The position numbers were made by a program, and so were the translations under genes. From assembly GCA_964035545.1 (NCBI GenBank), contig OZ037773.1:1827751-1891750 (forward strand): a stretch of 64,000 nt of DNA, read 5' to 3'. The stretch is from Bugula neritina (lineage: Eukaryota; Animalia; Bryozoa). A model generated the notes under the pieces. That model did not search any database, was not told the DNA's origin, and saw only the letters and a program-made list of their open reading frames with translations. This document shows positions 439 through 64,000 of the stretch, one piece after another (position 1 is the stretch's first letter; each line of letters begins with the position of its first letter).

Positions 439-10520
<10,082 letters not shown>

Positions 10521-34300: not shown

Positions 34301-37300
34301 AGTATTTCCATCCCTTTTATCTATACATATGTACATCATTTTAACCGTTTGATATTTGGGAGTTGTTTGATCAATGTGAAGCCTGTTTCCCATAATTCAT
34401 GTGAAGTGTTGAATACTGTGGGACTTAACCAACCATGCACAATATTTTCATGTCTCTGAAAAGTGTGGTTGTGTAGCCAATCACCCTGTTTTTCAATGAT
34501 AAAAGCCGTTTGAGTGGCTTAGCAGCCATAACTTCTATGCATGGACAGTTGATGATAGTAATATATGCATATAGTAGAACACTAGCTTGTAGCATATCAG
34601 TTTTCATATATAGTTTCAGATAGGAGTGTGACCAGAGGTCATTGTATTAGCACTACTAGTACTAACATTTCTGTTTCAGTCACATTTGCAGTTTTATCCA
34701 TGTGAAATGTGGTTTTGTGACATACATGATTGGCTAACTAGTGTATTTCTGTGACATGATTGACCGTTTAGTGTATTTCTGTGATGTGACTGGCTAATAT
34801 TTTTGTGACATGATTGGCTAATGAGTATATTTCAGTGACGTGATTGGCTGCTGTCTGTTAACAGGGAGGAGTTGGAGCGGCTGCAGGAAGAGCATGCTGC
34901 CGCGGAGGAGGAAAGAGCTCGGAAAGAAGAACAGCTCATGCTGACTCATGAAAGGAAAGTTCTGGAAATGGAGCGATTGGAGCGCCATCTGCAGGTAGTT
35001 TTTGTGTTGGGAGAGGCAACTCCAGTTAGTCACATTTTGGAGAGAAATAATTATTGTCACTTCTATAATTAAACTAAATCATTGGTGTTTATTCTTTCTA
35101 TAAGAGAAGTCAACTCTTTCTAACATCATTGGTCATCTCATAGTGTGACTAAGGATATCTCATTATACTGTTAGTAGTCAATGTCAAAGTTAACTTAATA
35201 TTCCACAAGGCATTCTGTGTCTACTGTTTAGTTTTATCTAATTTATGATATGCTGTCAGTATCTATTTTATTCTAATATCTAATTCTTTTCCAACTGTCC
35301 TTAGCTCCTAATATTTTAAAACCCTGTAACGTCATCAATACCAGAGCTTTCATAAACCATGTAGTCCAGATTTGAAAGAATAAAAATATATTTCTAGAGC
35401 TTATCTCAAGTCTTGATGATAATAACATTATTAAATAACATATCAACACCAACGCATGACTCATTAATGTGTGACTCATCTAAATATTTTCAGTTAATGA
35501 TCACAGAGAATGATGCAATGAGAGTTCGGGCTGAAGAGGAGATACAGCAGGCAAGGCAGCAGCTGGAAAAAGAGCGGCAGCAACGTGAGTATTATTTGTA
35601 ACTTCTCAACTGCGTTGAGTATATGAGGTGTTTGCTAATGTAACAGTTGTATGTTGAATCCTTCTATAAGCAGCTCTGATTTGGGGGTGACTGAGTGCAA
35701 TAGTTTAGATTCTTGAGTTTTGGAGTTGGGGGGGTCCATGTTTGAACTTGTCATTTCAAACTATGGCACTCAGTCACCTCCAACTCGGAGCTGCTTATAG
35801 GATAATTCTTAAATATTGGTGTCATCCATTTAGACCAAGAGCAGTTAGCCTGTGATCTAGCAGAACTGTCAGCTTTACGGGAAGCACAGCTGACTCGCCC
35901 TACTGACTCTGCCGATGGCCCTGGAAACGTGACTACGCAGACGGATGACTCACTGCAGGAATGTTCTGGAACTCAAACCGGAGCTGTGGAAGTGCTGAGT
36001 GAGTGTTTCTACTTCACTTACTAAGAGCTTGTGTATCTTCTCGTAGCTATAATCTGTGTAGCATGTTACTAGTATGTGTCTTCACTCATAGATCTGTACT
36101 CAGTGTATTGCGAGTGATACGCAGCATATTACTAGTATATTTTTCCACTCATAGCTATACTCTGTGTATTGCGAGTTTGTGGTGACTTATTAGTCTGAAT
36201 GGAGGCGCTACAAGTAACTGTTTACATTTATGTATTCTGGGAAATGCTTTGTTATAGTGTCTGAAGCTACTAGCTATACACTATGACAACTGCTGGTTGT
36301 GTATTCTGAGCTTTTCTTATATTGTGAAGAAACATAATTTCCACATATATTATTTGCCGACGATACGAACCTCTTCCTTGAATCAAAAAATCTATTAAAC
36401 AATATGGACATCATAAACTGTGAATTAAAGAAAATTGAAAATTGGTGCAATAAAAATAAATTAACTGTAAATATGAGTAAAACAAACTATATGATAATCA
36501 AAACAGCGCAAAATAAACAAGATTTAAATGGCTTTGCATTAGAAATGTTTAACAAAAAATTAGTGGAAGTAAAATCAACTACCTTCTTAGGTATTATAAT
36601 AGATTCACATCTTTCTTGGCAACAACATTGCAGCAAACTTTGTCAAAACCTAAGGCCCTTAGTAGGCTTGATAAGTAAATGTTCCAATCACCTACCTAGA
36701 AAAATTCTAATACAAATATATAACTCTTTTGTAAATTCTAAATTAACATATTGCCTAGAATCGTGGGGTAATGCAGCAAACATTTATCTTGAACCACTAC
36801 ATTTACTGCAAAAGAAAATACTGAGAATTATATATAAAAAGCATCACCTTTCCCCATCTAAACCACTGTTTCTTAGTTCTTCAATCATGCCTATTCACAC
36901 TCTACACAAATTCAAACTAATACTGCTCTCACATATAAACTTTACTATTCTCAACTAACACATCTCACACATAACTATCCCACAAGATTTTCAGAGTTCA
37001 GCCTACAAACTCCTCCATCATCAACTGCTGCAGGTCAACGAAGAGTGGAATTCCAATGTTCGACGCTATGGAATAAATTGCCTAGTTCTATTCGTGCTGT
37101 GGGGAGGGAGGCTGGTTTCAAACTTGCCCTGAGAGACCATCTAATGGCAAATTTCCAGATAAAAAAATAATACTTTTTAAGTTGCTAAAACTTCCAAAAA
37201 CCTAAACAAAAATCTTATATAACTGTCAACCATCGGCTCGGTGCCTCGACTAGCTACAGTGCTATTGCGCCATAGGCCCTGTCATTTTGTTTATTTTTTT

Positions 37301-40300: not shown

Positions 40301-43300
40301 AGTACTGAGTTATTCAAATTGTTACATTATATTTAATATGATTTACCAAAGAAGATTCTAGACTTGCTGCAGGTTTCTCATTATTTTAGTTGGATACAAC
40401 ACATTTTCAGTTAATTAATGCCCTCTGCTACCAGCTGAGACAGTAATTTGCCAACACCAAACACAGTCTAAACTACCTGTAGTATCATTTGGTGATTTGC
40501 AGCTAACAGAAATCATGCTTCTTATGTTGCAGCCCCGCCTTTGCAACTTGTAACATCTCCGATAACCCGGCCTACACCGAGTCCCTCACTCACAGTCTTG
40601 ATTTCTCTGACTCACTGCCTTTTAAACAACTTCAACCTAAACTCGCAATCCTTCCTTCAACAGACGAGATCAATGCGGAAGAGGCACCAGGAAATGCACT
40701 TGCCGAGAGTAGTCCTCGACCGTCTAGTAGTAAACCTTCTGCCAGAGGTAGCATCAAGTCTAAACGTACGTGTTGAATATATAGTCAGTATACTGTGTGG
40801 TGAATATATAGTCAGTATACTGTGTGTTGAATATATAGTCAGTATACTGTGTGTTGAATATATAGTCAGTATACTGTGTGTTGAATATATAGTCAGTATA
40901 CTGTGTGTTGAATATATAATCAGTATACTGTGTGGTGAATATATAGTCAGTATACTGTGTGGTGAATATATAGTCAGTATACTGTGTGTTGAATATATAG
41001 TTAGTATACTGTGTGGTGAATATATAGTCAGTATACTGTGTGTTGAATATATAGTCAGTATACTGTGTGGTGAATATATAGTCAGTATACTGTGTGTTGA
41101 ATATATAGTTAGTATACTGTGTGGTGAATATATAGTCAGTATACTGTGTGTTGAATATATAGTTAGTATACTGTGTGGTGAATATATAGTCAGTATACTG
41201 TGTGTTGAATATATAATCAGTATACTGTGTGGTGAATATATAGTCAGTATACTGTGTGGTGAATATATAGTCAGTATACTGTGTGTTGAATATATAGTTA
41301 GTATACTGTGTGGTGAATATATAGTCAGTATACTGTGTGTTGAATATATAGTCAGTATACTGTGTGGTGAATATATAGTCAGTATACTGTGTGTTGAATA
41401 TATAGTTAGTATACTGTGTGGTGAATATATAGTCAGTATACTGTGTGTTGAATATATAGTTAGTATACTGTGTGTTGAATATATAGTCAGTATACTGTGT
41501 GTTGAATATATAGTCAGTATACTGTGTGGTGAATATATAGTCAGTATACTGTGTGGTGAATATATAGTCAGTATACTGTGTGGTGAATATATAGTCAGTA
41601 TACTGTGTGTTGAATATATAGTTAGTATACTGTGTGGTGAATATATAGTTAGTATACTGTGTGGTGAATATATAGTCAGTATACTGTGTGTTGAATATAT
41701 AGTTAGTATACTGTGTGGTGAATATATAGTCAGTATACTGTGTGTTGAATATATAGTCAGTATACTGTGTGGTGAATATATAGTCAGTATACTGTGTGTT
41801 GAATATATAGTTAGTATACTGTGTGGTGAATATATAGTCAGTATACTGTGTGTTGAATATATAGTTAGTATACTGTGTGGTGAATATATAGTCAGTATAC
41901 TGTGTGTTGAATATATAATCAGTATACTGTGTGGTGAATATATAGTCAGTATACTGTGTGGTGAATATATAGTCAGTATACTGTGTGTTGAATATATAGT
42001 TAGTATACTGTGTGGTGAATATATAGTCAGTATACTGTGTGTTGAATATATAGTCAGTATACTGTGTGGTGAATATATAGTCAGTATACTGTGTGTTGAA
42101 TATATAGTTAGTATACTGTGTGGTGAATATATAGTCAGTATACTGTGTGTTGAATATATAGTTAGTATACTGTGTGTTGAATATATAGTCAGTATACTGT
42201 GTGTTGAATATATAGTCAGTATACTGTGTGGTGAATATATAGTCAGTATACTGTGTGGTGAATATATAGTCAGTATACTGTGTGGTGAATATATAGTCAG
42301 TATACTGTGTGTTGAATATATAGTTAGTATACTGTGTGGTGAATATATAGTTAGTATACTGTGTGGTGAATATATAGTCAGTATACTGTGTGGTGAATAT
42401 ATAGTCAGTATACTGTGTGTTGAATATATAGTTAGTATACTGTGTGGTGAATATATAGTCAGTATACTGTGTGTTGAATATATAGTTAGTATACTGTGTG
42501 GTGAATATATAGTCAGTATACTGTGTGTTGAATATATAGTTAGTATACTGTGTGTTGAATATATAGTCAGTATACTGTGTGTTGAATATATAGTCAGTAT
42601 ACTGTGTGTTGAATATAGAGTCAGTACAGTGTATGTTGAGCTACTGGTTGTTTTATTATATACAGCTTGTCGTCTGCTAAATGCTTGTCTGCTCTGTCGG
42701 CCACATTGTTTGCAATAATCTACCTATAAATCTGTATTACAGGGGCCCCTTCTACGACGTCTCGCTCCATAATACTAGGAATCAAGGCTAAGTACGGCAA
42801 CAAACGATCTCGTAGAGCTGATATACCCATAGAGATCTTCCTTCCTCCATCTCCACTTTCGTCTAGAGATATTTGCAGTGGTGGTAGTGGAGGAGGGGGA
42901 GGGGGCGGTGTCAGTCCCACCCTTACATCTGGTGAGTGGAATAGTGCATGTTCACAGTCTCTTTAGGTTTGAATAACCTAATGTGCTGAAGTAATTTTAT
43001 TATACTAACAAATTCTAATAGCCTATTGGATAGTGTTAACTATAACTGTCTCTGATTGGCTGATATGTTGTGTGGCTAACATATCCTCGCTGTGATTGGC
43101 TAACACAATATAACCTATACTGTAACTAGCTGATGAAGACATTCTGTTTTTGTCGGATTTTGTACATCTTGCTTATATAAATGAATGCTGTGCGCCTTTG
43201 CAGGACGTTCTAGGAGTTACGGTGAGCAACTGGGGGTACTATGCCCACCAGGAAACTGTATTCTATATCTTGTTGTCTACCCTGTCTGTCATCTCCCCTT

Positions 43301-46300
43301 GGTATAGCAGGTCCACACATGCTTGTTGCGGGCTTTAAATGTTTGTAACGGCGACTATGCTCAACTCCAAATTGAGTGTTCTCTGTGCAGTCTCAGCAGA
43401 AATTCAATCACGCTCATCACCAAACTGTTAGTCTATACTAGCCATTAGAAATGCTATATTCTGCCAAATTAGCTGCTTAATCAAAATTTAATACTTTATA
43501 ACATAACATAGTGTACTTGAGTACATCAACAAGTAAATGTGAGACTTGAGCACATCAACAAGTATGTGTGGGTCTAAATTGACCCAAACTGTCTGGTAGT
43601 GACTGTAGCTTTCCATTTTATTCGCTCTGTTTGTTTCTCGTTTCTCGATGTTATGTCTTGTATTGGTCAAATTTTCCACGGGGATTAATAGTGTCATCAC
43701 GTAGTGTGAGCACGTAGTGTGAGCACGTATGAGGTGTAGACCTAGTCATCAGACTCTAGATATATACCTGGTGCTCATGCTATGAGGTTTGGGCTATAGG
43801 GCTAAGGCTATGAGGTTTGGGCTATGGGGCTAAGGCTATGAGGTTTGGGCTATGGGGCTAAGGCTATGAGGCTTGGAGTTCAAGTTTTGGAGTGTAGACT
43901 TAGTGCTCAGGTTGTAGGGTGTTAGCTTTAGGGCGGTGTCAAAATCTCTCCAACCGTAATGTTTATGCCCCAATTGCTCTGATTGCTTTTAAACAAAATG
44001 AATGTTCTTTTTTAGCTGACAAAGAGATTTTCATACCCTTTGATAAGAACACGATGTTGTTCGCCAAGTCCCTGAGGGATCAGCAACGGTAACGTACTTT
44101 ACTAAATATAAGTCAGTGTATATATACTAGTGTATATATGTTAGTGTATATATGCTAGTGTATACATTTCACTGTAGACATGTTATTGTAGATATGTCAG
44201 TGTAGATATGTCAGTGTATATATGTTAGTGTAGATATGTCAGCGTAGATATGTGAGTGTATATATGTTTATGTAGATATGCTAGTGTATATATGTCAGTA
44301 TATATATGTCAGTGTATATTTGCGAGTGTATATATTCGAGTGTAAATATGTGTATATATATATATGTGTGTGTGTGTGTGTATATATGTATATATGTTAG
44401 TGTATATATATGTTGGTGTATATGTGTATGTATATATGTGAGTGTAGATATGCCAGTGCGCCAACTTTTATATTCTATAATATGAACATGTATGCAGACT
44501 TTCTATTTTGTAATATTTCAGTAAATCCAGCCAATCAGATTCAGTCGGCAGTTCCTCTCGAAAAGGTTCCACAACCAGCAGTACCTCTAAAAGAGGGGAC
44601 GGTTCACGCCGTGCAAGTAAATCTCCTTTAAGTCAGCATGCCACCTTAGAAGGTTTGTCAGTCTTCCTTTACAGTAAAACTGCTGTATGATATGGGGGTG
44701 TAAAGGTGTTGGAGAAGAAGTGTGGGGTGTTGGAGAGAATGGTAGTAGGGGTGTTGGGGGTAGAGGTGTTGGGGATAGAGTTGTTGGAGAGAGTGGTAGA
44801 GGGAGTGTTGGGAGTAGAGGTGTTGGAGAGAGTGGTAGTGGAGGTGTTGGGGGTAGAGGTGTTGGGGGGTAGAGTTGTTGGAGAGAGTGGTAGTGGAGGT
44901 GTTGGGGGTAGAGGTGTTGGGGGTAGAGGTGTTAGGGGTGTTGGAAAAGGTGGGGGTGTTGGCAGGGGTTGAGGTGTCTGTTTAGATTACCTCTGGGACT
45001 GCTGAGTAAAATAGAACACTCTATTAGTAACTGTAAGTCAATCAACTAGAATGTTATTTCATTGTTCCATTGTTATCTAACTTGTAGATACTTACAGTGT
45101 AAGTCAGTTCCACAGAGCACAGAGTGAAACAGACCTCCGCAATGCTAAGGTACATGTCATATATCTATAATATTATATAATGTGGTTCATTTCTCTATAT
45201 TATATAATGTATTTAATATTTTATATTATATAATAACTTCATTTCTATATATTATTATATTACATAATTCACATTTATATATTATATACTGTAACTGATA
45301 TATATATATAATATAATGTAATGTAATTTATGTCTCTATGTTATTTATTGTAGTTCATATTTTTATATTATATTATAATTATATATGCTATACTGAAATG
45401 TAGGAAAACTCCGACTGCACAGAAATGAACCAGCTGGAACAGCAATACCAACACATTTTGGATACGCACAGCGTTACAGATATCAGCTCTGCAGCGAATA
45501 GACTGCCAGGTCAGCTACAGTTTGAGTCACTTTAGTAACATGAATGCTGATTATGTTCAATTATTTTCTAATTTCATGGCTGTTTTAAAAAGTTCAAACT
45601 ATTCAATTTCTGCGCATTAAAAATCACTTTTTACACCCTTTCACAGCAAGTGGTTTTGTATACTCGTAATGTTTATCTCACAGTAATGTTTTCGTAAAAT
45701 AGTCTGTGTTCTAAAATTTATCAATTTTTAGTTTGATTAAACATCATTCTAGTCACTATTCTCCGTTATATTTTCATATGTGATCTCCTGTAGCGGACAG
45801 TATGGATGTCACCACCACTACACAAATGCTTCCCTCAGAAAGTGTCTTGGAGCTACACAGCTCTAACTCATTCGCTAGCATACAGGAAGTAGATGTTACT
45901 ATGGCAACTCAGGTAATTATTTTTAAAGCTAGCTAATATAGCTGTTTCTCATCTCACTGTAGTAAGTAAGTAATATGTTGGTATATAAACAATTCCCTTT
46001 ATATTACTCACATGTCACTCTATTACTCACGTGTCACTCTACTACTCACATGTCACTCTATGACTCTACTACTCATATGTCACTCTACTACTCACATGTC
46101 ACTCTATGACTCTATTACTCACATGTCACTCTACTACTCACATGTCACTCTATTACTCACATGTCACTCTACTACTCACATGTCACTCTATGACTCTACT
46201 ACTCACCTGTCACTCTACTACTCACATGTCACTCTACTACTCACATGTTACTCTACTACTCACATGTCACTCTACTACTCACATGTCACTCTACTACTCA

Positions 46301-49300
46301 CATGTCACTCTAATACTCACATGTCACTCTACTACTCACATGTCACTCTACTACTCACATGTCACTCTATGACTCACATGTCACTCTATGACTCACATGT
46401 CACTCTACTACTCACATGTTACTCTACTACTCACATGTCACTCTACTACTCACATGTCACTCTACTACTCACATGTCACTCTACTACTCACATGTCACTC
46501 TACTACTCACATGTCACTATACTACTCACACGTCACTAATACTCACATGTCACTCTACTATTCACATGTCACTCTACTACTCACGTGTCACTCTAATACT
46601 CACCTGTCACTCTGTTACTCACATGTCACTCTACTACTCACATGTCACTCTACTACTCACATGTCACTCTATGACTCACATGTCACTCTATGACTCACAT
46701 GTCACTCTACTACTCACATGTCACTCTACTACTCACATGTCACTCTATGACTCACATGTCACTCTATGACTCACATGTCACTCTACTACTCACATGTCAC
46801 TCTACTACTCACGTGTCACTCTAATACTCACCTGTCACTCTGTTACTCACATGTCACTCTACTACTCACATGTTACTATACTACTCACTTGTCACTATAC
46901 TACTCACATGTTACTCTATTACTCACATGTCACTCTACTACTCACTTGTCACTCTACTACTCACGTGTCACTCTACTACTCACTTGTCACTCTACTACTC
47001 ACATGTCACTCTACTACTCACATGTTACTCTAAGACTCACATGTCACTCTACTACTCACATGTCACTCTATTACTCACATGTCACTCTACTACTCACATG
47101 TCACTCTAATACTCACATGTCACTCTATTACTCACATGTCACTCTACTACTCACATCTTACTCTACATGACACCCGATCAGTGCTTTCAATATAGACTTA
47201 GAACTTCGAATCTATAGTTTCACTACTGTTAGCAGGCAGAAGAAGTGCCCCCAGTTGTGCAGTTCTATGAAGATGGTGAACCTGTGACCCCAGAAAGTTT
47301 AGCAAAGCGTCAACAACTGACCAAGAAAGCTCTGAAAGCGACGCAAGTAAAATACCGAGAACTGGAAGATGCTGTTATCAGGTAGGCAGCATTGTGAACA
47401 TGTTAATTCCTTCCTCTGAACAGACACTCTGTCTCACCTTGTCTATATCCTGTGAATTCTCACTGAGGTTGAGAAGTTTTATCATGTTGTTAGTGTTAGT
47501 TATCCTTTTCCCTGCCAGTTGTCTCCACTATGTCGGTTGTCATGACAACCATTGCCGGCTTGTCTGTTGCTATGAACTTTACAATTCATTGTTATTACTG
47601 TATGTTAGTTTATCTTAACGCAAGCTACTTTTTTGAAAGTAATATTTTTGCACCCCGTGGTTCTTGCCAGAGTTGAGGCTCCAATTATGATATTATTGAA
47701 ATCATGTGCTTGGAGATAGTACTTCCTTTAGTGCACATAATGATAGCTATAATGCAGCATTGTATCAACAGGTTTCCATATAGTATAAAAGTAATAGTTT
47801 TATATAATGCAGTATATAACAATAGTTTCTTTATAGAAGCTTAAAGTGTAATCAATCCAGAAAGGGAAAATCTTCGACTAAAATATAATTTGCACCTCAT
47901 TGGCTGATCATAGAAAAGTGGTAGCTCTCTTTATAAGTGAATTCTATTATTTTCAATTTCAAGTTCAAACTTGATACAAGATGTGACAAGTGCTTTATGC
48001 ATACTGATATCACATGTATGTGACATTAGCCATTACTTGATCTTTACTGCTTTGACATTAATCATCAGGTGTTCCCCTCTGATGTGACATTTGTCACTAG
48101 GTGCTCTCGTCTGATGTGACATTAGTCACTAAGTGCTCTCTTCTGATGTGACATTTGTCACTAGGTGCTTTCCTCTGATGTGACATTAATCACCAGGTGC
48201 TCTTCTATTGTGACATTTGTCACTAAGTGCTCTCTTCTGATGTGACATTTGTCACTAGGTGTTTTCCTCTGATGTGACATTTGTCACTAGGTGCTCTCTT
48301 CTCATGTGAAACGTGTTACAAAGTGCTACACATGAATGCAGGAGAGCTTATTATTGTAAACATGTGTAAAAATATTGAATATTTTGATCATCAATTATCT
48401 TCATGCTAATAACCAATCAATACGAGACAATAGAGTGGAATATTGATTGTACAAATTGTGTGCTGTAAGTATGGCACCCTGCAGACATTCGCCCTGCATT
48501 GAGTTCGCTGCCGTCAGCTATGTTACCCTCATGAGACTAGAAATGTGATCATCTAGTGTCAGAAATGGGCCATAGCTGGAAGTACTACTTTAATTTATTG
48601 TCTTGTAAGCCTCTCCCATCTTCTCACAGGAAAAAGAGAAGTCGGAGGAAGAAACGGTGAGTTTCGTTGTTTTGGATGTCAGCTTTGTTAATCCTATCAG
48701 AGCAGCCAGCTGTTGTAGCCAGCTTCTAATAATAGCAGTAGAGGCAGCACGTGTGTTGTACTTATGTGCTGTATAATATACTAGTATATACAGAGTATGT
48801 GTTATATACTGTATAATATACTAGTATATACAGAGTGTGTGTTATATACTGTATAATAGAGTAGTATATACAGAGTATGTGTTATATACTGTATAATATG
48901 CTAGTATATACAGAGTATGTGTTATATACTGTATAATATACTAGTACATACAGAGTGTGTGTTATATACTGTATAATATACTAGTATATACAGAGTATGT
49001 GTTATATACTGTATAATATACTAGTATATACAGAGTATGTGTTATATACTGTATAATATACTAGTATATACAGAGTATATGTTATATACTGTATAATATA
49101 CTAGTATATACAGAGTATGTGTTATATACTGTATAATATACTAGTATATAAGCGTACACAGTAAATATATTGTTGCACTGTACTTTTTGTGTGTTGTCAG
49201 TGCATGGCTCAGTAACACTTAGTATCATGGGGAACTGCCACATGGTAGCCTATAACTCTTTTTGGAGTTATCTTATTATTTAATGATATTTAGCTATGTG

Positions 49301-52300: not shown

Positions 52301-55300
52301 ATAGAAGCAATTTATTCAATCCCCTGAGAGGGTGTTTGCCTCTGGTAGGCAGCGCATTGACTCTGTATGCACTGAGGCAGCAGTGAGGCAGCAGTGAGGG
52401 GTGTGAATTCGTGTAGCTCCATACGCAGGTGGTGTAGGTGCCACCCTATACAAAGCTAACAAGAGAGGCATGGTCATACACCTTTAGCTGTCCTATAAAT
52501 GGCAGCAGGGTAGAGCACTTCACAGTATAATCTCGGATTGTATAGGATGGGGGGCTGTCAGGGCAAATCTCCCAGCAGGAGGAAGAGAAAACGGAGGAAG
52601 ATAAAGTTGTAAGAATAGTTTATAAAGCTATATCACTGTGTTTGTGTTGGTGGTGATAACCTTTCGGTTTTAGAGTGTGTTATGTTCATTTGGGGAATTT
52701 ATCAGTTAGTTTAGCTGCAAGCTCTTACCAACTGAAAGTCTAGTATGATATAGCTAGTAATATTGACACCATGTCGTGTGTATTTACTTCTCTTAAAGTG
52801 CTGTGATGATTGTGGGGTAAAAGTGTGAAAGCTGCATAACCGAAAAGTAGATATTTTTAAAATAAAGGGACAACTCCAACATTTTGGGTTCACTTGTTTG
52901 TATCTTTCCTTCAAAACACAGTTAATATGGTAGTTAATATGGTAGTTGACATGATGTATAGCAGTGTTAAAGTAGAGTCATAGTACAATATGCTAGTTGT
53001 ATTCAACTTATTCTAAAGTCTCTCTCGTAGCATTTTTCAAATTGATGAATTAATGCTTGCATTTAGTATGCTTGACAATTTAACTGTATGATTTTTTACC
53101 ACTTGATATTCTATTATTAACACAAAAAGTTTTAGTGTTTTGAGCCTCTTTTACTATTGAATTCACCATTTCTTATAGATTGCTGATAATTATTCTATTG
53201 GACCACTATGTTTATTATTGTGTAGCTATTCTATATTTACCCACTTTGTTGGTTTTTACCAACTTAGCAGCACTAGATGTACAGAAAGGCTGTTTTGCAT
53301 GTTAGAAAGTGTTGCACCACTCAACTTACTAACTATCTTATACAGCTTGTCATGTTCATTACTAACTGAAATGTTACACTGTGTGTATGCAGGCCTTTTA
53401 TTATAGCAACCATACAAATACTTCTACTATTCCTATTAATATTTTAACATCTGGGCTGCGTTCAATTGGCCATATATTGCATGCCCTGCTATATATTCAA
53501 TTTACTGCTATATATTCAATTTACTGCTGTGTATTCAATATGCTGCTGTATAATATTCAGGTTATCCTTATTACTAGTTCCATCACTGAGAGAAGACAAC
53601 TCTGCATTATGAATATATATTATTCTTATTGTTAAGTGCACACGACCTTGTTATTTCCACAGGGTGTGCATAGCTTGTGAATTTGCTCTATAATTCTGGC
53701 TGTATCTTGTACAATGTAATACAACATGTATTAGTACATTTACTACAACATGTATTAATACATGTAATACAACATGTACTGCAACATGTATTAGTACATG
53801 TAATTATACAACATGTATTAGTACATGTAATTATACAACATGTATTAGTACATGTAATTATACAACATGTATTAGTACATGTACTACAAAATGTATTACA
53901 GTTGTGTGTTGTGTTTTTAGAGCCACTAAAGCCCGGCAGCAGAACTTAAACAGACCTAGAGATGACTCATTCTCCGAAGATTCACTGAAAGGTCTGTCAA
54001 CACTTTTAGAATAATATGTATTACTATTACAGCATATTACTATATTATTACATTGTTATATTATTGTTATACCGTATTATCGTATTGTGATATTAAATTG
54101 TTGTATATAACTATATCATATATGATATTGCTATAGCATATATAAACTCAGGCAAGTTTATATATGCTATAACTATATCATATGATATTGCTATAGCATA
54201 TATAAACTCAGGCAAGTTTATAGTCACCATTCCTGGGAGAAACCCTGATGAGAAGGTTTTTACTAAATTGAGCTAAGGACTTATTCATCTATGTGGCACA
54301 GGAGCAATTATTACTGGATACTCTTCCTAGCATCACCAATGGTCTTTACTGGGGTTCAACCCCATGACTACTGTGCTTACTAAACCAACACTCTTATTCC
54401 TGGACCACAACTGCTCCCTTATTGCTATAGCATATAGTAGTACTCTATTATCGCATTACTATATATTTGTATTACTATGTTACTATATTACTATATTACT
54501 ATATAGTATGGTATTACTATATTACTGTATTACTATATTACTATATAGTATGGTATTACTATATTACTATATAGTATGGTATTACTATATTACTGTATTA
54601 CTATATATTATGGTATTACTATACTATATTAATGTATATCACATGGTATTATTATGTAACTTGGCAGGTGAACAGCAAGCAGCAAGACTTGATAGGAGAA
54701 AGCGAAGGATTTCCTCAACACTCAAGGCAGCCAATAAGGAATCAGATAACTTTAGTGAGAGTGATGCCGCGCTGTCAGATGACAGTCTGGCTGAGCCAGT
54801 CATCAAGCGCAGGTCAGTTTATCTCTTTTAAATGTCAGCTGATAGAGTAACCTTGTAACGCTATTGTTTGCTTCTCCTTATACTTGTAGTTTCACTTTAG
54901 TTTTTCTTTATATAATTGCAGTTTAGTCGTTCTCCATATATATGTACTTTTACTTTAGTCTTCATGTAACTGTAGTTTCGCTTTATTTATTCTTCATATA
55001 AATGCAGTTTCACTTTAGTTATTCTCCTTATAATTGTAGTTCATCTGCTCAAAGGCAAGCAGAAGAATTGTTCAGACTGAGAGAAGAGTTTATGGATGCA
55101 AAGTTCAGTGTTAAGAAGGACCTCGTTGTTCAGGCACATCCTTCCTGGGACTGTCTGAGCGCTGCCGCAGTAGTAGAGCTTCCGACAGTAGTTTCATGTT
55201 GTACGTCACTCTGTACTATACTCTGTACTATACTCTGTACTATACTCTGTACTATACTCTGTACTATACTCTGTACTATACTCTGTACTATACTCTGTAC

Positions 55301-58300
55301 TATACTCTGTACTATACTCTGTACTATACTCTGTACTATACTCTGTACTATACTCTGTACTATACTCTGTACTATACTCTGTACTATACTCTGTACTATA
55401 CTCTGTACTATACTCTGTACTATACTCTGTACTATACTCTGTACTATACTCTGTACTATACTCTGTGCTATACTCTGTGCTATACTCTGTGTACTATACT
55501 CTGTGTACTATACTCTGTACTATACTCTGTACTATACAGAGTATAGTATAGTATAGTATAGTTTAGCACTATACTCTGTGCTAAACACTGTATTATACTC
55601 TGTGCTAAACACTGTATTATACTCTATAGTATACTCTGTACTATACTCTGTATTATACTCTGTATTATGCTGTGCATTATAATGTATTACACACTGCACT
55701 ATACCGCAATGTGCGCTGTTTTATATATTATATTGTACTCTGCACCTTATAGGGTTTATACTATTATTATATTATGTTACACTCCTCATCATATACTATT
55801 ATACAGATCACGCCGCTCCAGCTATCAGAAAACCTATTTTAAATTTGGATATCCATAGACTGAGCTCTACACCTGTGGATGTCTGGAGCTCAGTCTATTC
55901 TCAATCTACATCCGCCGACAAGTTCATGGTCACTGCTAGACCTACCAACAGCAACGCCAAGCGTAAGTTATTTTCCTTTTCAGCTTTTCTATGACATCAC
56001 ATCCTGTTATTAGTGCATGTGTTCTCTACTCACCTATCTACTCTATGATATCACATCCTGTTGCTAGTCAGTGTGATTTGCTTTTTCTTTTCCATTTTAA
56101 ATTCATGGAGAATAATTAAAACATTGAGTTTTTGTAACAATCTCGTGGTCTGTAGGTGGGATGTGTACCCAGTCAAGGACTGATGTGTGGGGCTCTATTC
56201 ACCCGTCACATCTATCAGATACAGGTCTTCGGGCTATAGTTGTTGATGAAGTTCATTGCCAATGTTCTGAAGAAGGATTAGAGTTTAAGGGTGGGCTAGG
56301 CAGTAACCCTCTAGCAAGATCTACTGTTTCTATTGTTAGCTATGATGGTAAGTAGTTGACGACTTCTGATGTCCTCAAGTCACACTTGAGGTCTGAATAA
56401 AAACACCAGAATATTATATAATTTCTTAAAAAGAAACAAAAAATAATATACAAGATCTACCAAAACTGCAAGGTCATAATTTCTTGTCTCATTCGTATAA
56501 ACATTGAACAACACTTCAACATTCTTCACATTTTAATTTATTTTGCTTGTAATAGTCAACTGTTTGAAGAAAAATCTCGTGATTTTCTTATAGATTCCGA
56601 GTCGTTGGCCAAAGCTAGCACAGCTACCAGTGCTCTTTTACTTGGAGCACCGAGTGACACCTGTTCTACTAACACCAATGACCTGCTGGCAGATGTCACA
56701 GTTGTCAACTCAACTTTATCTGACTCATTCACTGCCACTAAACAAGTGCCTGCAGCTAATGAAGCACCTGCCTCTGAGACCTATATGACTGTCGACTTGT
56801 TGACAGCTGAACAAGAACTTGATCAGGTTGATGGAAATGGTCATACGAAAGCAGATTATTTTCTCTCTTCTCACCGAACACCTGTCTCTACCTGTCACCA
56901 ACCCAGTCTCTCACTCAACATTAAAGGTAGATTAGAGAGTCAGTGCTGTAGATCTGTCTGTAAACATACATGTATAATCAGCAAATGAAACTGTAAATCT
57001 CTGGAAAGTGTTTTAGTAGACTGTAAACTTCTCTTCAACACTTGCAACGTTTCTCTGCATTATTTCTTCTTCCTGTTTCAGATGCTGACTCAGATGACAC
57101 GGATGAACTTCTAGCTTGTCGTCCAATCAATACAGCTCAAGAACTAAAAGCCAATGAAATGTATGTTTACACTTGACGTACTGAGTGTTGGATGTATTTT
57201 ATCTGTTTCCTTTTGCACTTGCTGCTTGATGCCTTGTTTATTACAAGTTTCCCATTTTGTTTTGCTACTCATTATTTTTTATGCCAATTTATGTCCAAAC
57301 TAATATTTTGTTATATTTTGTTGTTATTGTTACATTATTTTGCTGGTCTGTCTAGATTAGCACATGTTACTCACCAGTCACCTGTTGTCACATGCCAGCT
57401 CAATAATGACACTCATGACTCACCTGCTGTCACTTGTCAACTTGACACTGACACCTGTGACTCACCTGCTGATTCACCGCTATCTATACAACAAATAGCC
57501 CAGCTTTTAGTTGATGAGGTCCTTAAAAAGAGTGTGGCGTTGGTGTCAGCTACAGCTCTTGCTTCTAGTGTCACGGAGGATGTTGTTGTGACGGAAGTTT
57601 ATTTTAGTGACTCCAGCTCTGAGAAAAGGTGCTTTTTGTGAAACATTGGAATTGTAGTTAGAGTTCTCTATCTATCTCTAAACCTTGCAGTGTAGTACTA
57701 ATGTTGTGTAACATAATATATTCAGTTATGAGAAGCTTATCTGTCCACTGAACTTGATTTGAACTAAGATTGATGCTCAGTTTGTCTTCCAAGCAAATTC
57801 CTGCTTACTTTTTTTTAACATTTTTAAAATACAAGGATTCATTCTTGTGTTGACAAACTAATATTAATTTTCATACCATGATAATCAGTTCGGTTCCTAA
57901 TTCACGTCAAAGTTTAACCCTCACTTTATGACATTGTAGCGTGAAAAAACGGTATGATTTCAACTCCCTAGTATACCAGTGTGCATCACTTCATTCCACT
58001 GCTTTCTTTTGATGCCATCAATCAGCTGTTTGCTTCTCATGCGTTGGTTTCTTCTTCTGTTTGTTACAAGTTTCTGCTGCTGTTTCTTTCCTCTTTCTAT
58101 TTTTTGTGATGAGACTTAGGGAACGAATAATTGAACATTCCGTATTGGTATTTTTAATATTGTCTGTGAGGCTAATTATGTGGCTACTATATCAATTGGT
58201 GACTGAAAGGCAAGAGTGACTGTGTAGTAAGAGTGACTGTGTAGTAAGCGTGACTGTGTAGTGAGAGTTGTTGTATAGTCAGAGTGACTGCGTAGTGAAA

Positions 58301-61300
58301 GTTTCTGTGTAGTGAAAGTGACTGGCAGATGCACACTATTTATATATGCATGCTCTCTGTAGTGTCTTGCTCTAATACTCACTGTTATTTTAGCAGCTCT
58401 CAGCTGAGTTGTGTTGCTATGCTGTAGTTGCACTGATTTGCTGTAGAACTGTGCTGAGTGAGCTTATTGTAAGGCACCACTTGTGCACCACACTTGTAGT
58501 TATATTCCTTTAGCCTCAGGCAACAGCTTGCATTCAAGTGATGCTTATGCTATGCTGTAGTTACCATGAGTTGGTTGGAGTGAGCTCAAAGATATTTTCT
58601 CCTGATGGTACGGCACTCAAGGATGAGCCCCTGTACTTTGATGATCCTCCTGTGAGTGCCCCTCAGTCTATATATTATGTATATTAGTACAGTGACTTGT
58701 TGGAAAGTTTATTAGAGCTGTGTGTGTTGTAAGCCGTTAGTGTGATCTGATGTTGTACAGTTTCAGGGACGTTCTTTGTCAGCTCAGTCTGAGACTGTGC
58801 AACTCAACGGCTCTGGTGTCCAGGTCATAGCAGTGCCTTGGGACGTTGGAACTACCCCCTTACCAAAAGCCTACAAAACTGAAGTAATTGAAGCTAACAG
58901 ATGTGAAATAATGAACGATTCTAATCAAGATCCCAATCACCATAAAGATTGCTTGGAAAAGCCACTAGAAAGTCACATAACTGATAGCAAAGGCGAAAGT
59001 TGTGATACAGACCTGTACTCCGTGGATCAGCCAATCCCAATTGCTGTTTTATCTCAGATAGTAAAAGAAGATTATAGAGGATTTGAACAAACTGGTTCTT
59101 CGATTCAATTTTATGAAAACAAGACCAAAGATGAGCCAGGTGAGTGGATAATTGTAAACTGGCTGCAGTTACTCTACAGAGTGAATCTGCTGCAGTTACT
59201 CTACAGAGTGAATCTGCTGCAGTTACTCTACAGAGTGAATATACTGCAGTTACTCTACAGTCTACAGAGTGAATCTGCTGCAATTACTCTACAGAGTGAA
59301 TCTGCTGCAGTTACTCTGCAGAGTGAATCTGCTGCAGTTACTCTACAGAGTGAATCTGCTGCAGTTATTCTACAGTCTACAGAGTGAATCTGCTGCAGTT
59401 ACTCTACAGAGTGAATCTGCTGCAGTTACTCTACAGAGTGAATCTGCTGCAGTTACTCTACAAAGTCAATCTGCTCTAGTTTTTCTACAAGCTAAATCTG
59501 CTGCAAGTTTCTACTATTCTAGTCTGTCATGTTTTCAGCTGATGCAATGCTAAAGACGTCTGCAGAGTCCATGTGCTCGGAGAGTGATGAAACTGAGAGT
59601 GAGTCACGATCAGCTGGCAGTTACCTTCTTGAAAATAATACTGAGATGAAGGACCTAGCAGAAAGCCAAGTGTCCCAGTCTCATATTATATCCAGTATTG
59701 CAGAAGAAAAGGGTGTGTTTACTGTTGATGATTTAGACTAGTAGTAGATTTGCTGCTTGCTGTTTTTTCTAGAAAGTTCATTGGCTTTGGTGCACAGTTT
59801 GTCAGTTAAGCCGACTGCGAGTTTGGTTCATAGGTTATTGAAATATGTTTTAGAACCAATCATACTAAAAAGGAAGTCACATGACAAATTAGGAGACTCG
59901 GCCATTGGCTCTGATTTGACAGAAGATGTTGAGTTGAATAATCAAAAACTGCATCAGGAAAGACGTATGTACATATAGCATACTGATATTATTAGCTTTC
60001 ATTTCTTGTACCACCAGAGCTTTCTCTTAGTGGTACCAAGGTTCGAATCGCTGTGAGAATCCCTGATGGGTGATGTTTTTTTAACAGAATAGATGATGTC
60101 TTTTTTTTAAAATTAGGCTAGGGACTGTATAGGCTGTGGCACAAGAGTAATTATGACCAGATACTCTTTTTAACATTACCAATAACTTTGGCGGGATTCG
60201 AACCCTTGACTAATATTTTAGCCATTTGATTATACTAGGGCTGCTAAGAATTCAAGTCTCATTATCAGCACGCTATTCTTTTCATTATAGAGCATACTCT
60301 ATTTATTTATAACTGAAATTAATTTGTTGTGTTTATTGAAATAGCCTTTGGTCCTTTATTATAGCCGGGTCATATGCTGCCACTAGAGAACAGCTCCTTC
60401 TCTCTGACTCTGGTGAGTGACTCATTATCTGTCCATGTGCTGCTCTGTGTTTGTCTGTCATTCCGTCTGCTGCTGTGTCTGTGTAGTGTGGTTCTCACAT
60501 TCACGTCTCGTTTGTTTAGGGAACGGTTCTGATAAAGCCGATACTCCCCCTCCTCCGTCTGACTCCGAATTCCCAACTAACCCTGAGAGCGGTCTCGCAG
60601 AGACTGGTGATGAAGATACGTGTGATCGTACCCAGTCTCTCCGTTCTTCTTCTCTCTCTAGTAAGATGTGTTCCTCTGTATTTCTGTGTAACTCTGTGGG
60701 TGTCTGTCTTGGTCTTCGTAGCCTAGCTGTATCGGGTATATGTACATACAGTGTAGATGTATAGTGTATAGGTAAGTGTATAGTGTAGATGTATAGTGTA
60801 CAGTGTATAGGGTGTATGTATAGTATATAGTGCATATGTATGTGTAGTGTTTAGGTATAGTGTACAGTGTAGATGTATAGTGTATAGGTAAGTGTATAGT
60901 ATATAAGGTAGGTGTATAGGGTATATGTATAATATATACTGAATATGTATGTATAGTGTATAAAGTAAGTGTATAGTCTATAGTGTAGATGTATGTATAG
61001 TGTATAGGTAAGTGTGCAAGGTATATACATGTATAGTATATAAGGTTGATGAATAGTATATAAAGTATATAGTATACAAAGTATATAGTATATAAAGTAT
61101 ATAGTATATATAGTATATAAAGTATATAAAGTATATAGTATGTAAAGTATATAGTATGTAAAGTATATAGTATATAAAGTATATAGTATATAAAGTATAT
61201 AGTATATATAGTATATAGTATATAAAGTATATAGTATATATAGTATATAGTATATATAGTATATATAGTATATAAGGTTGATGAATAGTATATAAAGTAT

Positions 61301-64000
61301 ATAGTATGTAAAGTATATAGTATATATAGTATATAGTATATAAAGTATATAGTATATAAAGTATACAGTATATATAGTATATAGTATATATAGTATATAA
61401 AGTATATAGTATATAAAGTATATACTATATAAAGTATATAGTATATAAAGTATATAGTATATAAAGTATATAGTATGTAAAGTATATAGTATATAAAGTA
61501 TATAGTATATAAAGTATATAGTATATAAAGTATATAGTATATAAAGTATATAGTATATAAAGTATATAGTATATAAAGTATATAGTATATAAAGTATATA
61601 CTATATAAAGTATATAGTATATAAAGTATATAGTATATAAAGTATATAGTATGTAAAGTATATAGTATATAAAGTATATAGTATATAAAGTATATAGTAT
61701 ATAAAGTATATAGTATATAAAGTATATAGCATACAAAGTATATAGTATATAAAGTATATAGTATATATAGTATATAGTATATAAAGTATATAGTATATAA
61801 AGTATATAGTATATAAATTATAAAGTATATAGTATATAAAGTATATAGTATATAAAGTATATAGTATATAAAGTATATAGTATATATAGTATATACTATA
61901 TAAAGTATATAGTATATAAAGTATATAGTATACAGTATATAAAGTATATAGTATATAAAGTATATAGTATATGAAGTATATAGTATATAAAGTATATAGT
62001 ATATAAAGTATATAGTATACAGTATATAAAGTATATAGTATATAAAGTATATAGTATATAAAGTATATAGTATATAAAGTATATAGTATATAAAGTATAT
62101 AGTATATAAAGTATATAGTATATATAGTATATAGTATATATAGTATATAAAGTATATAGTATATAAAGTATATAGTATATAAAGTATATAGTATATAAAG
62201 TATATAGTATATAAAATATATAGTATATATAGTATATAGTATATAAAGTATATAGTATATAAAGTATATAGTATATAAATTATAAAGTATATAGTATATA
62301 AAGTATATAGTATATAAAGTATATAGTATATAAAGTATATAGTATATAAAGTATATAGTATATATAGTATATACTATATAAAGTATATAGTATATAAAGT
62401 ATATAGTATACAGTATATAAAGTATATAGTATATAAAGTATATAGTATATGAAGTATATAGTATATAAAGTATATAGTATATAAAGTATATAGTATACAG
62501 TATATAAAGTATATAGTATATAAAGTATATAGTATATAAAGTATATAGTATATAAAGTATATACTATATAAAGTATATAGTATATAAAGTATATAGTATA
62601 TAAAGTATATAGTATATAAAGTATATAGTATATAAAGTATATACTATATAAAGTATATAGTATATAAAGTATATAGTATATAAAGTATATAGTATATAAA
62701 GTATATAGTATATAAAGTATATAGTATATATAGTATATAGTATATATAGTATATAAAGTATATAGTATATAAAGTATATAGTATATAAAGTATATAGTAT
62801 ATAAAGTATATAGTATATAAAGTATATAGTATATATAGTATATACTATATAAAGTATATAGTATATAAAGTATATAGTATATAAAGTATATAGTATATAT
62901 AGTATATACTATATAAAGTATATAGTATATAAAGTATATAGTATACAGTATATAAAGTATATAGTATATAAAGTATATAGTATATGAAGTATATAGTATA
63001 TGAAGTATATAGTATATAAAGTATATAGTATATAAAGTATATAGTATACAGTATATAAAGTATATAGTATATAAAGTATATAGTATATGAAGTATATAGT
63101 ATATAAAGTATATAGTATATAAAGTATATAGTATATAAAGTATATAGTATATAAAGTATATAGTATATAAAGTATATAGTATATAAAGTATATAGTATAT
63201 AAAGTATATAGTATATAAAGTATGTAGTATATAAAGTATATAGTATATAAAGTATATAGTATGTAAAGTATATAGTATATAAAGTATATAGTATATAAAG
63301 TATATAGTATGTAAAGTATATAGTATATGAACACAATGGTATGATGCAGGCGGAGAAAGCATCACGTTTGTTTTCATGACTCGCTCGCACAGTGCTGATG
63401 AAATTAACGCAGACGACACAGTTTCTGAAGATCTAGACATTAATGAAGTGTTTGGTAGAAGTTCTTGTGATGTAGACAGCACTTTAGGGTCAAAGGTCAG
63501 ACATATATGTTATCTGTATCTGTTTATTTTACAGCTGGAGTTACTGCTCACCAACCGGTAGGGAAAAACCTCACTATGATTGGCTAATCACATTTATTAA
63601 ATAATCGTGCAAACTACACAAAGCAATATTTCCTGACCACGCTGTTTATGATTTGCGATAAGGCACCATCTGAATGAAGCTTTCAAAATGCTGATTTGTG
63701 TTTATTTTGTCCTGACTGGTACATTCTAAGTTCTTTTATCCGTGGGTAAGCGATAGACCAGGCTCCATGTCTAATTAGGCTATTCTAGTGACCGCAGTTG
63801 TTTACTTTTCACTTTTTATCACTGTTGCTGTATTTACTTGCAGGCTGATGTCCAGGTTGTAAGATATACATCAGAGCCAAACCTCCGCTCCAGGTCGCCC
63901 AATGAGGTCTCTCCTAGAGTCTGTACCAGTCCACGCTCTCTCACTCTGTTTGCTGACAGCGTGGACATCAATGACAGTGGTGAATTATCTCCTCACCTAC
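16408..64000 (+). CDS. STARD9: Kinesin-3 STARD9/KIF16A-like protein (motor, FHA, coiled coil, long Ser-rich tail); runs off the window end
   Basis: Phase-consistent exon chain: 16408-16454, 16684-16753, 18382-18504, 21627-21735, 22035-22149, 22472-22599, 22788-22857, 23165-23305, 24008-24108, 24768-24992, 25277-25374, 25548-25625, 25859-25987, 26466-26597, 27532-27721, 27961-28043, 28944-29101, 29293-29313, 30919-30972, 33720-33758, 34865-34994, 35494-35584, 35834-35998, 37478-37626, 38070-38381, 38558-38733, 39001-39325, 39617-39774, 40533-40765, 42743-42931, 44016-44088, 44522-44652, 45088-45149, 45404-45509, 45794-45912, 47236-47381, 48630-48656, 53921-53991, 54668-54812, 55040-55200, 55807-55962, 56156-56347, 56594-56926, 57082-57160, 57356-57628, 58561-58651, 58761-59139, 59539-59712, 59854-59964, 60365-60412, 60520-60660, 63350-63495, 63844->64000. 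STARD9 is favoured over KIF16B by [27 protein letters not shown], the Ser-rich loop-12 insert and the very long tail. Tail exons rest on splice signals and frame only. Confidence 0.8.
17424..17715. repeat. 36-bp minisatellite containing AAGTAAGT
   Basis: About 8 units of ATAAAGTAAGTAGTGTATTGTCATAGTATATTTACT. Confidence 0.9.
18540..18872. repeat. (GTA/GTG/ATA)n compound trinucleotide repeat
   Basis: Read directly. Confidence 0.95.
22202..22412. mobile_element. Tc1/mariner-superfamily (Tigger-like) MITE
   Basis: TA|CAGTGCTCTCTACATATCT ... AGATACAGAGGGAGCGCTG|TA: imperfect inverted ends flanked by TA. Confidence 0.5.
23304..23482. repeat. 20-bp minisatellite AGGTAAGTTACAGTAGATGT spanning the donor of kinesin exon 8
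   Basis: About 8 units, some degenerate. Confidence 0.9.
24121..24435. repeat. 23-bp minisatellite TATATTATGTAATCATATTCTAG
   Basis: Read directly. Confidence 0.85.
26466..28043 (+). CDS. STARD9: Kinesin-3 FHA-domain exons
   Basis: [22 protein letters not shown] | VGTTTIG...[16 protein letters not shown]...[14 protein letters not shown] | [24 protein letters not shown], the KIF16-type FHA region. Confidence 0.92.
26581..27492. repeat. 30-bp minisatellite TAATATATCATATCAGA|GTATGTATTACAG (about 30 copies) spanning the exon-14 donor
   Basis: The first unit comprises the last 17 nt of exon 14 plus the 5' splice site. Confidence 0.97.
28096..28238. repeat. 13-bp minisatellite CACAGTATATATT
   Basis: Read directly. 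Confidence 0.9.
29364..29377. promoter_or_regulatory. RFX X-box motif in a kinesin intron
   Basis: GTTGCTATGGTAAC matches the X-box consensus GTTRCYATGGNAAC. Confidence 0.5.
29844..30070. mobile_element. hAT (Charlie-like) MITE
   Basis: Terminal inverted repeats CAGGGGTGGGCAACT / AGTTGCCCACCCCTC, internal GGGCC motifs, and 8-bp flanks ATATATAG / ATATATAT. Confidence 0.8.
30076..30293 (-). mobile_element. tRNA-derived SINE, copy 2
   Basis: Minus strand reads GGGAGCAGCTGTGGTCTAGAGGTTAGAGCG...GGGTTTGAACCCC, then AGGAAGTGCATCCAG...TGTGCC. Homologous to copy 1. Confidence 0.87.
30480..30890. repeat. 21-bp minisatellite AGTATAGAGTATAGAATACAC
   Basis: Read directly. Confidence 0.85.
30993..31633. 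repeat. 42-bp minisatellite (about 15 copies)
   Basis: Unit ATTATATATCTGTATATATTCTTATATCATACATCTCAACAT; the ORF track shows the matching 14-aa period. Confidence 0.93.
35664..35800. mobile_element. Short foldback/MITE with ~43-bp imperfect terminal inverted repeats
   Basis: Left end CTATAAGCAGCTCTGATTTGGGGGTGACTGAGTGCAATAGTTT versus the reverse complement of the right end, CTATAAGCAGCTCCGAGTTGGAGGTGACTGAGTGCCATAGTTT. The end GGAGCTGCTTATAG recurs at 14714-14727. Confidence 0.75.
36345..37360 (+). mobile_element. 5'-truncated LINE (CR1/L2/Crack-type reverse transcriptase C-terminus)
   Basis: [10 protein letters not shown] (FADD at 36353-36364) is in frame with ORF 36404-36958 ([49 protein letters not shown]). 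A frameshifted [10 protein letters not shown] follows, then a (CAAA)n tail near 37340-37355. Confidence 0.9.
37850..38069. repeat. 19-bp minisatellite TGTG(T/C)TGACAGTACAATGA ending at a 3' splice site
   Basis: About 11 units, running into GTGTTCTCTAG|exon 38070. Confidence 0.92.
40770..42625. repeat. 27-bp minisatellite (about 68 copies) with higher-order structure
   Basis: Unit TGAATATATAGT(C/T)AGTATACTGTGTG(G/T); a marker variant recurs at 40911, 41208 and 41910. Confidence 0.97.
44695..44972. repeat. G-rich degenerate repeat (GTGTTGGGGGTAGAG)
   Basis: Read directly; multiple G4-G6 runs. Confidence 0.8.
46003..47165. repeat. 19-bp minisatellite ACTCACATGTCACTCTACT (about 60 copies)
   Basis: Read directly. 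Confidence 0.96.
47536..47549. promoter_or_regulatory. Palindromic RFX X-box motif
   Basis: GTTGTCATGACAAC is a perfect 14-bp palindrome. Confidence 0.45.
48050..48308. repeat. 32-bp minisatellite with internal palindrome GTGACA-TT-TGTCAC
   Basis: About 8 units of TCTGATGTGACATTTGTCACTAGGTGCTCTCT. Confidence 0.88.
48769..49150. repeat. 40-bp minisatellite (about 9 copies)
   Basis: Unit GTATAATATACTAGTATATACAGAGTATGTGTTATATACT. Confidence 0.93.
49843..51020. repeat. Compound (TATAC/ACTGT) satellite
   Basis: Read directly. Confidence 0.93.
52494..52500 (+). promoter_or_regulatory. TATA box of a candidate internal promoter
   Basis: TATAAAT, followed about 25-30 nt later by an Inr-like CTTCACAGT; it lies 53 nt before the MGGC ATG. 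Confidence 0.45.
52547..52608 (+). CDS. Candidate alternative first (or cassette) coding exon [20 protein letters not shown](L) of the kinesin locus
   Basis: ATG at 52547 and a GTAAGA donor at 52609 in phase 2, matching the phase-2 acceptor at 53921. TATAAAT lies at 52494. An AG at 52544-45 would also allow in-frame internal use. Confidence 0.6.
54203..54418 (-). mobile_element. tRNA-derived SINE, copy 3, with a 17-bp target-site duplication
   Basis: Homologous to copies 1 and 2; TATTGCTATAGCATATA occurs at 54186-54202 and 54420-54436. Confidence 0.87.
55201..55540. repeat. 12-bp minisatellite GTACTATACTCT, starting at the donor GTACGT
   Basis: Read directly. Confidence 0.95.
59163..59465. 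repeat. 27-bp minisatellite CTGCAGTTACTCTACAGAGTGAATCTG
   Basis: Read directly. Confidence 0.92.
60047..60211 (-). mobile_element. tRNA-derived SINE, copy 4 (diverged, partial)
   Basis: CCCTGATGG...TGTGGCACAAGAGTAATTATGACCAGATACTC...GGGATTCGAACCC; the minus strand gives a perfect B box GGGTTCGAATCCC. Confidence 0.75.
60750..63330. repeat. 16-bp satellite GTATATAAAGTATATA (about 2.3 kb) with a degenerate 5' part
   Basis: Read directly. The variant AAATT at 61815 and 62277 marks an internal ~462-bp duplication. Confidence 0.96.

Follow-up and report, generated by a model that had tools for sequence, protein, structure and literature searches.

The locus analyzed here raises the question of whether the tail of a kinesin can carry a docking site for PKA. 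The window, that is, the whole 64,000-nucleotide stretch of DNA under analysis, corresponds to C9:1827751-1891750 in a 216-Mb assembly and includes much of a kinesin gene, in the tail of which a first-pass annotation had described a short amphipathic helix of the AKAP type. The reading that accounts best for the data, and that appears somewhat probable, is that this segment is a splice-regulated, isoform-specific docking helix in the tail of a kinesin-3. The observations behind it are the coding sequence, the exon borders, RNA for both inclusion and skipping of the exon, purifying selection and the PKA regulatory subunits encoded in the genome.

A kinesin-3 gene with a low-complexity tail

The ORF pieces with matches to the kinesin motor domain are followed by an exon encoding an FHA domain, a hallmark of kinesin-3 (Table 1). 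Given this succession of motor and FHA exons, and that the best solved-structure match of one of the motor exons is KIF1A, the gene is assigned by its sequence to kinesin-3, with the subfamily left broad. It is located on the + strand and extends from about 18.3 kb to past the end of the window; RNA support for the tail spans 55807-59143, and the motor and FHA exons are placed upstream of this span by ORFs and Pfam matches. In the RNA-supported tail piece of 501 aa, Ser (12%), Asp (9%) and Thr (9%) are abundant, and no Pfam domain was detected in the ORFs of the tail as far as the next gene, including about 10 kb beyond the window (L025). The N-terminal motor, the FHA domain and the very long, low-complexity tail are shared with kinesin-3 of the KIF16/STARD9 type but, in contrast to the latter, the tail of this kinesin-3 gave no match to START, PX, PH or any other Pfam domain. 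An identification as STARD9 was considered and rejected: the label is unsupported because the 11 START matches in the genome are all on contigs other than C9.

Two genes upstream of the kinesin, one of them on the opposite strand, were recognized from ORF translations, and an ORF within an intron resembles a mobile element (Table 1). The next gene downstream appears, by eye, to encode a kinesin light chain, with TPR-like ORFs at L026:4600-6600 and L028:1-2000, about 24-32 kb beyond the end of the window (G000:C9). The kinesin-3 motor gene and a light-chain gene would thus appear to adjoin on the same strand.

Table 1. Features of the window (positions in the 64,000-nucleotide stretch; identities are to the sister lineage discussed in the text)
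Feature	Position	Strand	Evidence or remarks
NEMF/Caliban-like gene, upstream neighbour	900-10500	+	NFACT-type exon sequences; ORF translations
Short-chain dehydrogenase/retinol-dehydrogenase-like gene, upstream neighbour	12000-13800	-	ORF translations
Kinesin motor-domain ORF pieces	22449-22604, 23112-23309, 24746-25093	+	Pfam PF00225, E 1e-7 to 5e-11
FHA-domain exon	27532-27735	+	Pfam PF00498, E 4.9e-11
Intronic 184-aa ORF	36404-36958	+	Resembles a fragment of a non-LTR retrotransposon reverse transcriptase, by eye
Long intronic minisatellites	26581-27492, 40541-42718, 46012-47170, 55208-55668, 59162-59505, 61400-63500		Open in several frames
ORF piece with RRKRRIS and KRRS	54364-54831	+	Basophilic (PKA-type) phosphorylation consensus; about 2.7 kb upstream of the helix exon
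Small RNA-defined exon	55807-55962	+	RNA contigs, AG/GT borders
Small RNA-defined exon	56156-56347	+	RNA contigs, AG/GT borders
Large, disordered RNA-defined exon	56594-56926	+	RNA contigs, AG/GT borders
Small constitutive exon upstream of the cassette	57082-57160	+	RNA contigs/joints, AG/GT borders; 98.7% identity
Upstream flanking intron	57161-57355	+	92.3% identity vs 85-87% in other introns
In-frame cassette exon, 273 nt (91 codons), kinesin-3 tail	57356-57628	+	AG/GT borders, RNA joints
42-bp tandem repeat, 2.2 copies	57378-57471	+	Tandem Repeats Finder
AKAP-pattern peptide, 17 residues	57486-57536	+	Translation
Predicted alpha-helix, exon residues 44-65	57486-57551	+	AlphaFold2, single sequence; Ser-Pro-Leu-Ser just before
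Start of the downstream intron, first 120 nt	57629-57748	+	98.3% and 93.3% identity (60-nt bins), then 58-70%
Small constitutive exon downstream of the cassette	58561-58651	+	RNA contigs/joints, AG/GT borders
Large, disordered RNA-defined exon	58761-59143	+	RNA contigs, AG/GT borders

An optional, in-frame exon

The exon structure of the tail was derived from the alignment to 55800-59150 of RNA contigs from three RNA-derived runs, each from a different study, together with the run that is probably behind the assembly. The RNA contigs cover exons alone, with GT..AG joints, and therefore originate from spliced RNA; all of them come from a sister lineage, not from the individual that supplied the window. 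The exon that encodes the peptide had been proposed in the first-pass annotation, which named RNA support as a check, and its limits proved exact to the base, being defined by AG at 57354-57355, GT at 57629-57630 and the joints 57160>57356 and 57628>58561, both GT..AG, in RNA contigs from the three studies. The exon is thus expressed and spliced in. New relative to that annotation is its optional nature: the joint 57160>58561, which skips the exon, is present in all three RNA runs (X1, X3 and X4). The contig depths for inclusion and skipping are, respectively, 123 and 182 in X1, 4 and 172 in X3, and about 6 and 41 in X4, so skipping is usually found at the greater depth and in X1 inclusion is comparable to skipping. 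Contig depth is a crude measure and a poor gauge of isoform ratios, and the claim is therefore confined to the existence of both splice forms and to the difference in inclusion among the samples.

The frame remains open either way, over 501 codons with the 273-nt exon and 410 codons without it, and the exon is therefore an in-frame cassette. Because it is optional, the predicted helix would be present in some isoforms only. The cassette is single copy in the genome, and its N-terminal half consists of 14-residue units encoded by the 42-bp tandem repeat. Within the intron 3' of the cassette, there is a low-depth RNA contig (X3, depth 3.4) at 57925-58096, and the block 57929-58048 of the same intron shows 93-95% identity to the sister lineage vs 58-70% in the adjoining intron sequence. 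The region 57925-58096 may contain an additional, rarely used exon or a conserved element that acts in splicing; alternatively, the contig may come from unspliced RNA.

The predicted helix and its candidate partners

Translation of the exon yields exactly the 17-residue peptide of the first-pass annotation, with hydrophobic residues in positions 1, 4/5, 8/9 and 12/13 and a small residue, Ser, in position 16. AlphaFold2, run without an alignment, predicts one helix in the exon with low confidence (pLDDT about 57); the rest of the exon is non-helical, with two weak strand segments, both in the tandem-repeat half. The prediction agrees with the earlier description of an isolated helix amid Ser/Asp-rich low complexity, as does the Ser/Asp/Thr-rich composition of the tail piece. 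On a helical wheel, the hydrophobic face covers about 180 degrees, with Leu7 on the polar side; the helical hydrophobic moment is moderate (0.32-0.35), and higher values occur elsewhere in the tail piece. The hydrophobic run continues for about 12 residues beyond the AKAP-pattern motif, and the sequence C-terminal to the motif is rich in Ser, Thr, Ala, Val and Leu, with two Lys at the boundary. The flanks of the predicted helix are disordered and acidic, and the 25-mer centred on the motif is acidic to neutral, with a pI of 5.8. A coiled-coil reading was dropped because the hydrophobic residues are spaced 3-1-3-1 instead of forming a heptad.

A docking helix would work as follows. The long tail of the kinesin-3 motor, disordered and rich in Ser, Asp and Thr, would receive a single amphipathic alpha-helix of about 22 residues from an alternatively spliced, in-frame cassette that is kept by selection. 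In isoforms with the exon, a broad hydrophobic face (I1, I4, A5, L8, V9, V12, L13, S16) would bury in the groove of a partner; in those without it, the docking site would be missing from the tail. Formation of the helix, docking as such and the identity of the partner are inferred. Within this reading, PKA regulatory subunits, or related proteins with the RIIa/DPY-30 fold, provide the most specific candidate partner in their docking/dimerisation domain, although it is an unlikely one.

Potential partners of this kind are encoded in the genome. RIIa exons followed by cNMP-binding exons on the same strand are present at three to four loci; in comparisons with solved structures, the docking domain at one of these (L008) is RI-like (E 2.5e-19) and that at another (L009) is RII-like (E 2.7e-9). 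Judging by these matches, the genome encodes one RI-like and at least one RII-like PKA regulatory subunit with a docking domain. Other RIIa-domain loci, such as L006, have no cNMP-binding exons nearby and are alternative partner candidates, given that docking domains of the RIIa/DPY-30 fold recognize amphipathic helices of the same type (PMC12203939). The proteins bound by ropporin, SP17 and DPY-30 employ this kind of helix as well (PMC12203939); if the kinesin resembles these, the partner would not be PKA, and the two cases are indistinguishable by sequence. RIIa and cNMP-binding matches were also found on the small contigs C102, C172, C166, C144, C66, C53, C315 and C121 (G000). These matches contain many in-frame TAA and TAG codons and no TGA, which suggests that they are DNA of an organism with a reassigned, ciliate-like code that is present in the assembly or, alternatively, pseudogenes.

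The alternative that survives best, unlikely as it is, is that of an A-kinase anchoring helix in the strict sense, which would bind the docking/dimerisation dimer of RII-type rather than RI-type regulatory subunits, so that the exon-including isoform would move the PKA holoenzyme on microtubules or be locally regulated by PKA. AKAP-IS, Ht31 and AKAP18 share the hydrophobic-pair register of the peptide. Like these canonical helices (Ht31 being that of AKAP-Lbc), the candidate occupies each core position, with Ala in position 5, Val-Asp in positions 9-10 and the small residue in position 16. AKAP anchoring helices are amphipathic helices of 14-18 residues, with a hydrophobic pair per turn, in a disordered, acidic context (PMC12083921), and the pI and the flanks of the candidate are consistent with this description. 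The purifying selection on the helix (see below), the RI-like and RII-like subunits encoded in the genome and, if it is part of the transcript, the basophilic sites in the upstream ORF piece (Table 1) also point in this direction, and there is precedent for the origin of AKAP helices within unrelated scaffolds (PMC12203939).

Against this possibility stands, above all, the generality of the pattern, which would be matched by any four-turn amphipathic helix. For a generic residue composition, one match to the 16-position pattern is expected in about every 2,336 residues, and one to a looser 12-mer RII-binding consensus in about every 456; a 12-mer consensus of this kind was reportedly published by Hundsrucker et al. 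in 2010. The peptide fits both, and in shuffled versions of the 501-aa piece the 16-position pattern occurs at least once with a probability of 0.058 and the 12-mer with one of 0.52. Real helices are periodic, so that the actual match rate would be above the random figure. By chance, a tail with a few thousand residues should contain about one match, and finding one here is therefore unremarkable. Among the confirmed exons of the kinesin-3 gene, no second match was found; the others are located in intronic tandem repeats. The long intronic minisatellites (Table 1) produce long false ORFs and account for the majority of spurious hits to the amphipathic pattern.

Database searches, too, speak against anchoring. 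The HMM check named in the first-pass annotation came out negative: neither RII_binding_1 nor any other AKAP family of Pfam matched the exon or the 32-aa and 22-aa helix pieces at E<=10, in searches in which the HMMER filters lose most weak matches and models this short have little power. AKAP peptides among solved structures were not matched by the helix region either (phmmer, E<=10). The RI-selective determinant, an aromatic residue followed by Ala in helix positions 1-2 (PMC12083921), is absent from the predicted helix, which begins with Ser-Ile-Gln-Gln; therefore, if this is a PKA anchor at all, it would be of the RII type. The position of Leu7 and the extension of the hydrophobic run past the motif are unfavourable as well, and an invertebrate origin has been traced for only a handful of AKAP families (PMC12083921). 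Altogether, the earlier reading of a PKA docking site finds partial support: the core positions are filled, but the pattern is generic for amphipathic helices and Pfam is negative. Since this is a frequent kind of pattern match, the PKA claim makes the peptide a reasonable candidate for experiment and not a discovery.

Comparison with known systems leads to a similar picture. Unlike canonical AKAP helices, the candidate is Pfam-negative, has a hydrophobic run longer than the motif and is encoded by an optional exon, restricted to one lineage, in the gene of a motor protein. Merlin and the vertebrate ERM proteins are described as scaffolds with secondarily gained AKAP helices, and talin and MYPT1 have been proposed as further cases (PMC12203939; 10.1101/2023.08.20.554038; 10.1101/2023.04.27.538407). 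As in merlin and ERM, the candidate anchoring helix lies inside a protein with another main job; however, the merlin and ERM cases are supported by binding experiments and the kinesin candidate by the pattern and selection. Costal2/KIF7, also of the kinesin type, serves as a scaffold on which PKA meets its substrates but belongs to a different kinesin family, and we are aware of no report of an AKAP-type helix or a docking-domain contact in it. No paper describing a kinesin as an AKAP was found in the literature searched and, to our knowledge, no kinesin is known to use a classical AKAP helix.

A kinesin-3 that turns into an AKAP when the lineage-specific cassette is spliced in, and not otherwise, is an unlikely reading. 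If true, transport of the PKA holoenzyme by the motor, or local control of the motor by PKA, would depend on alternative splicing, and the protein would be an invertebrate AKAP of independent origin on a microtubule motor; outside vertebrates, few AKAP families have been traced (PMC12083921). If the helix docks PKA, this would be the first known kinesin with a classical AKAP helix, and one in which anchoring is switched by splicing. Even if PKA is not the partner, the exon would still be a clear example of an interaction module, at once optional and constrained, in a fast-evolving, disordered motor tail. The module has defined borders and contains a short peptide that is open to direct experiment.

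Conservation of the exon and the remaining alternatives

A HMMER search of 1.84 billion protein representatives with the exon yielded one relative, P0001, an ORF fragment with 98% identity that was called on genomic contigs from metagenome samples (L029-L033). From their overall identity to the window of 86-88%, these contigs are assigned to a divergent sister lineage. The same variants occur in the RNA contigs, so that the RNA evidence belongs to this lineage as well. Two other proteins, P0002 and P0003, were rejected as homologues, being chance matches to the tandem-repeat half of the cassette alone. No relative beyond the sister lineage was found among JGI metagenome contigs, with the cassette exon and one conserved neighbour exon as queries, and an ESM Atlas feature search with the helix region returned nothing usable. 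All homologue searches were performed exon by exon, and exons were joined solely for frame checks and substitution counts.

This narrow distribution agrees with the possibility, in itself quite improbable, that the exon has no specific function, being a young, lineage-restricted exon subject to noisy splicing and bearing a chance pattern match. The tandem repeat resulting from a 42-bp duplication, which makes up a third of the exon, the low inclusion depth in two of the three RNA runs and the chance expectation for the pattern fit this possibility as well. The substitutions do not. Introns are 85-92% identical to those of the sister lineage, with a divergence of about 13%, whereas the cassette is 97.8% identical, with 6 differences in 273 nt vs about 34 at intron-like divergence; the two large disordered exons are 89.5% and 93.5% identical. 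Four of the cassette differences are synonymous and two are conservative replacements (V>A in the half with the tandem repeat and V>I close to the exon end). By the Nei-Gojobori method, dN is 0.010, dS 0.064 and dN/dS 0.15 for the cassette, compared to 0.052-0.088, 0.13-0.20 and 0.40-0.44 for the large neighbour exons and 0-0.021, 0.06-0.17 and 0-0.14 for the small exons. The helix and about 70 residues around it show no amino acid change, and the sole difference within the 17-residue peptide, seen in RNA and in sister-lineage DNA, is 57503 G>A, which is synonymous in a Gln codon. The hydrophobic face, the conservation of which in orthologues was a point on which the first-pass annotation made its proposal depend, is thus unchanged in one sister lineage at about 13% intron divergence, a shallow comparison.

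The splice sites of the cassette are the same in the window and in the sister lineage, and both the upstream flanking intron and the start of the downstream intron, in particular its first 60 nt, are better conserved than other intron sequence (Table 1). Alternative exons under regulation usually combine a low dS with conservation of splice sites and flanking intron sequence, and this combination points to regulated splicing here; the comparable depths of inclusion and skipping in X1 likewise argue against mere splicing noise. The identity of the cassette, its dN/dS and the conserved flanks together indicate that the exon is kept by selection. In terms of these sequence comparisons, the exon is under purifying selection, in a test of small evolutionary depth that involves one sister lineage.

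Least likely of all, and very improbable, is a membrane-binding amphipathic helix that, in the isoform with the exon, would rest on cargo membranes together with the sequence that follows it, in place of the PH, PX or START lipid-binding domains of other kinesin-3 tails: the dearth of Pfam domains in the tail ORFs and of START on the contig, the Ser/Thr/Ala/Val/Leu-rich stretch after the motif and the two Lys at its boundary are in its favour, but the helix is without bulky aromatic residues, has Asp-Glu in the middle and carries a slightly negative net charge along with its moderate hydrophobic moment.

Finally, in 55570-59400 (compared with L029-L033), the introns of the window diverge by 12-15% from those in public samples, metagenome and RNA, that bear the label of the same organism. 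This difference points to very divergent haplotypes or to cryptic sibling species.
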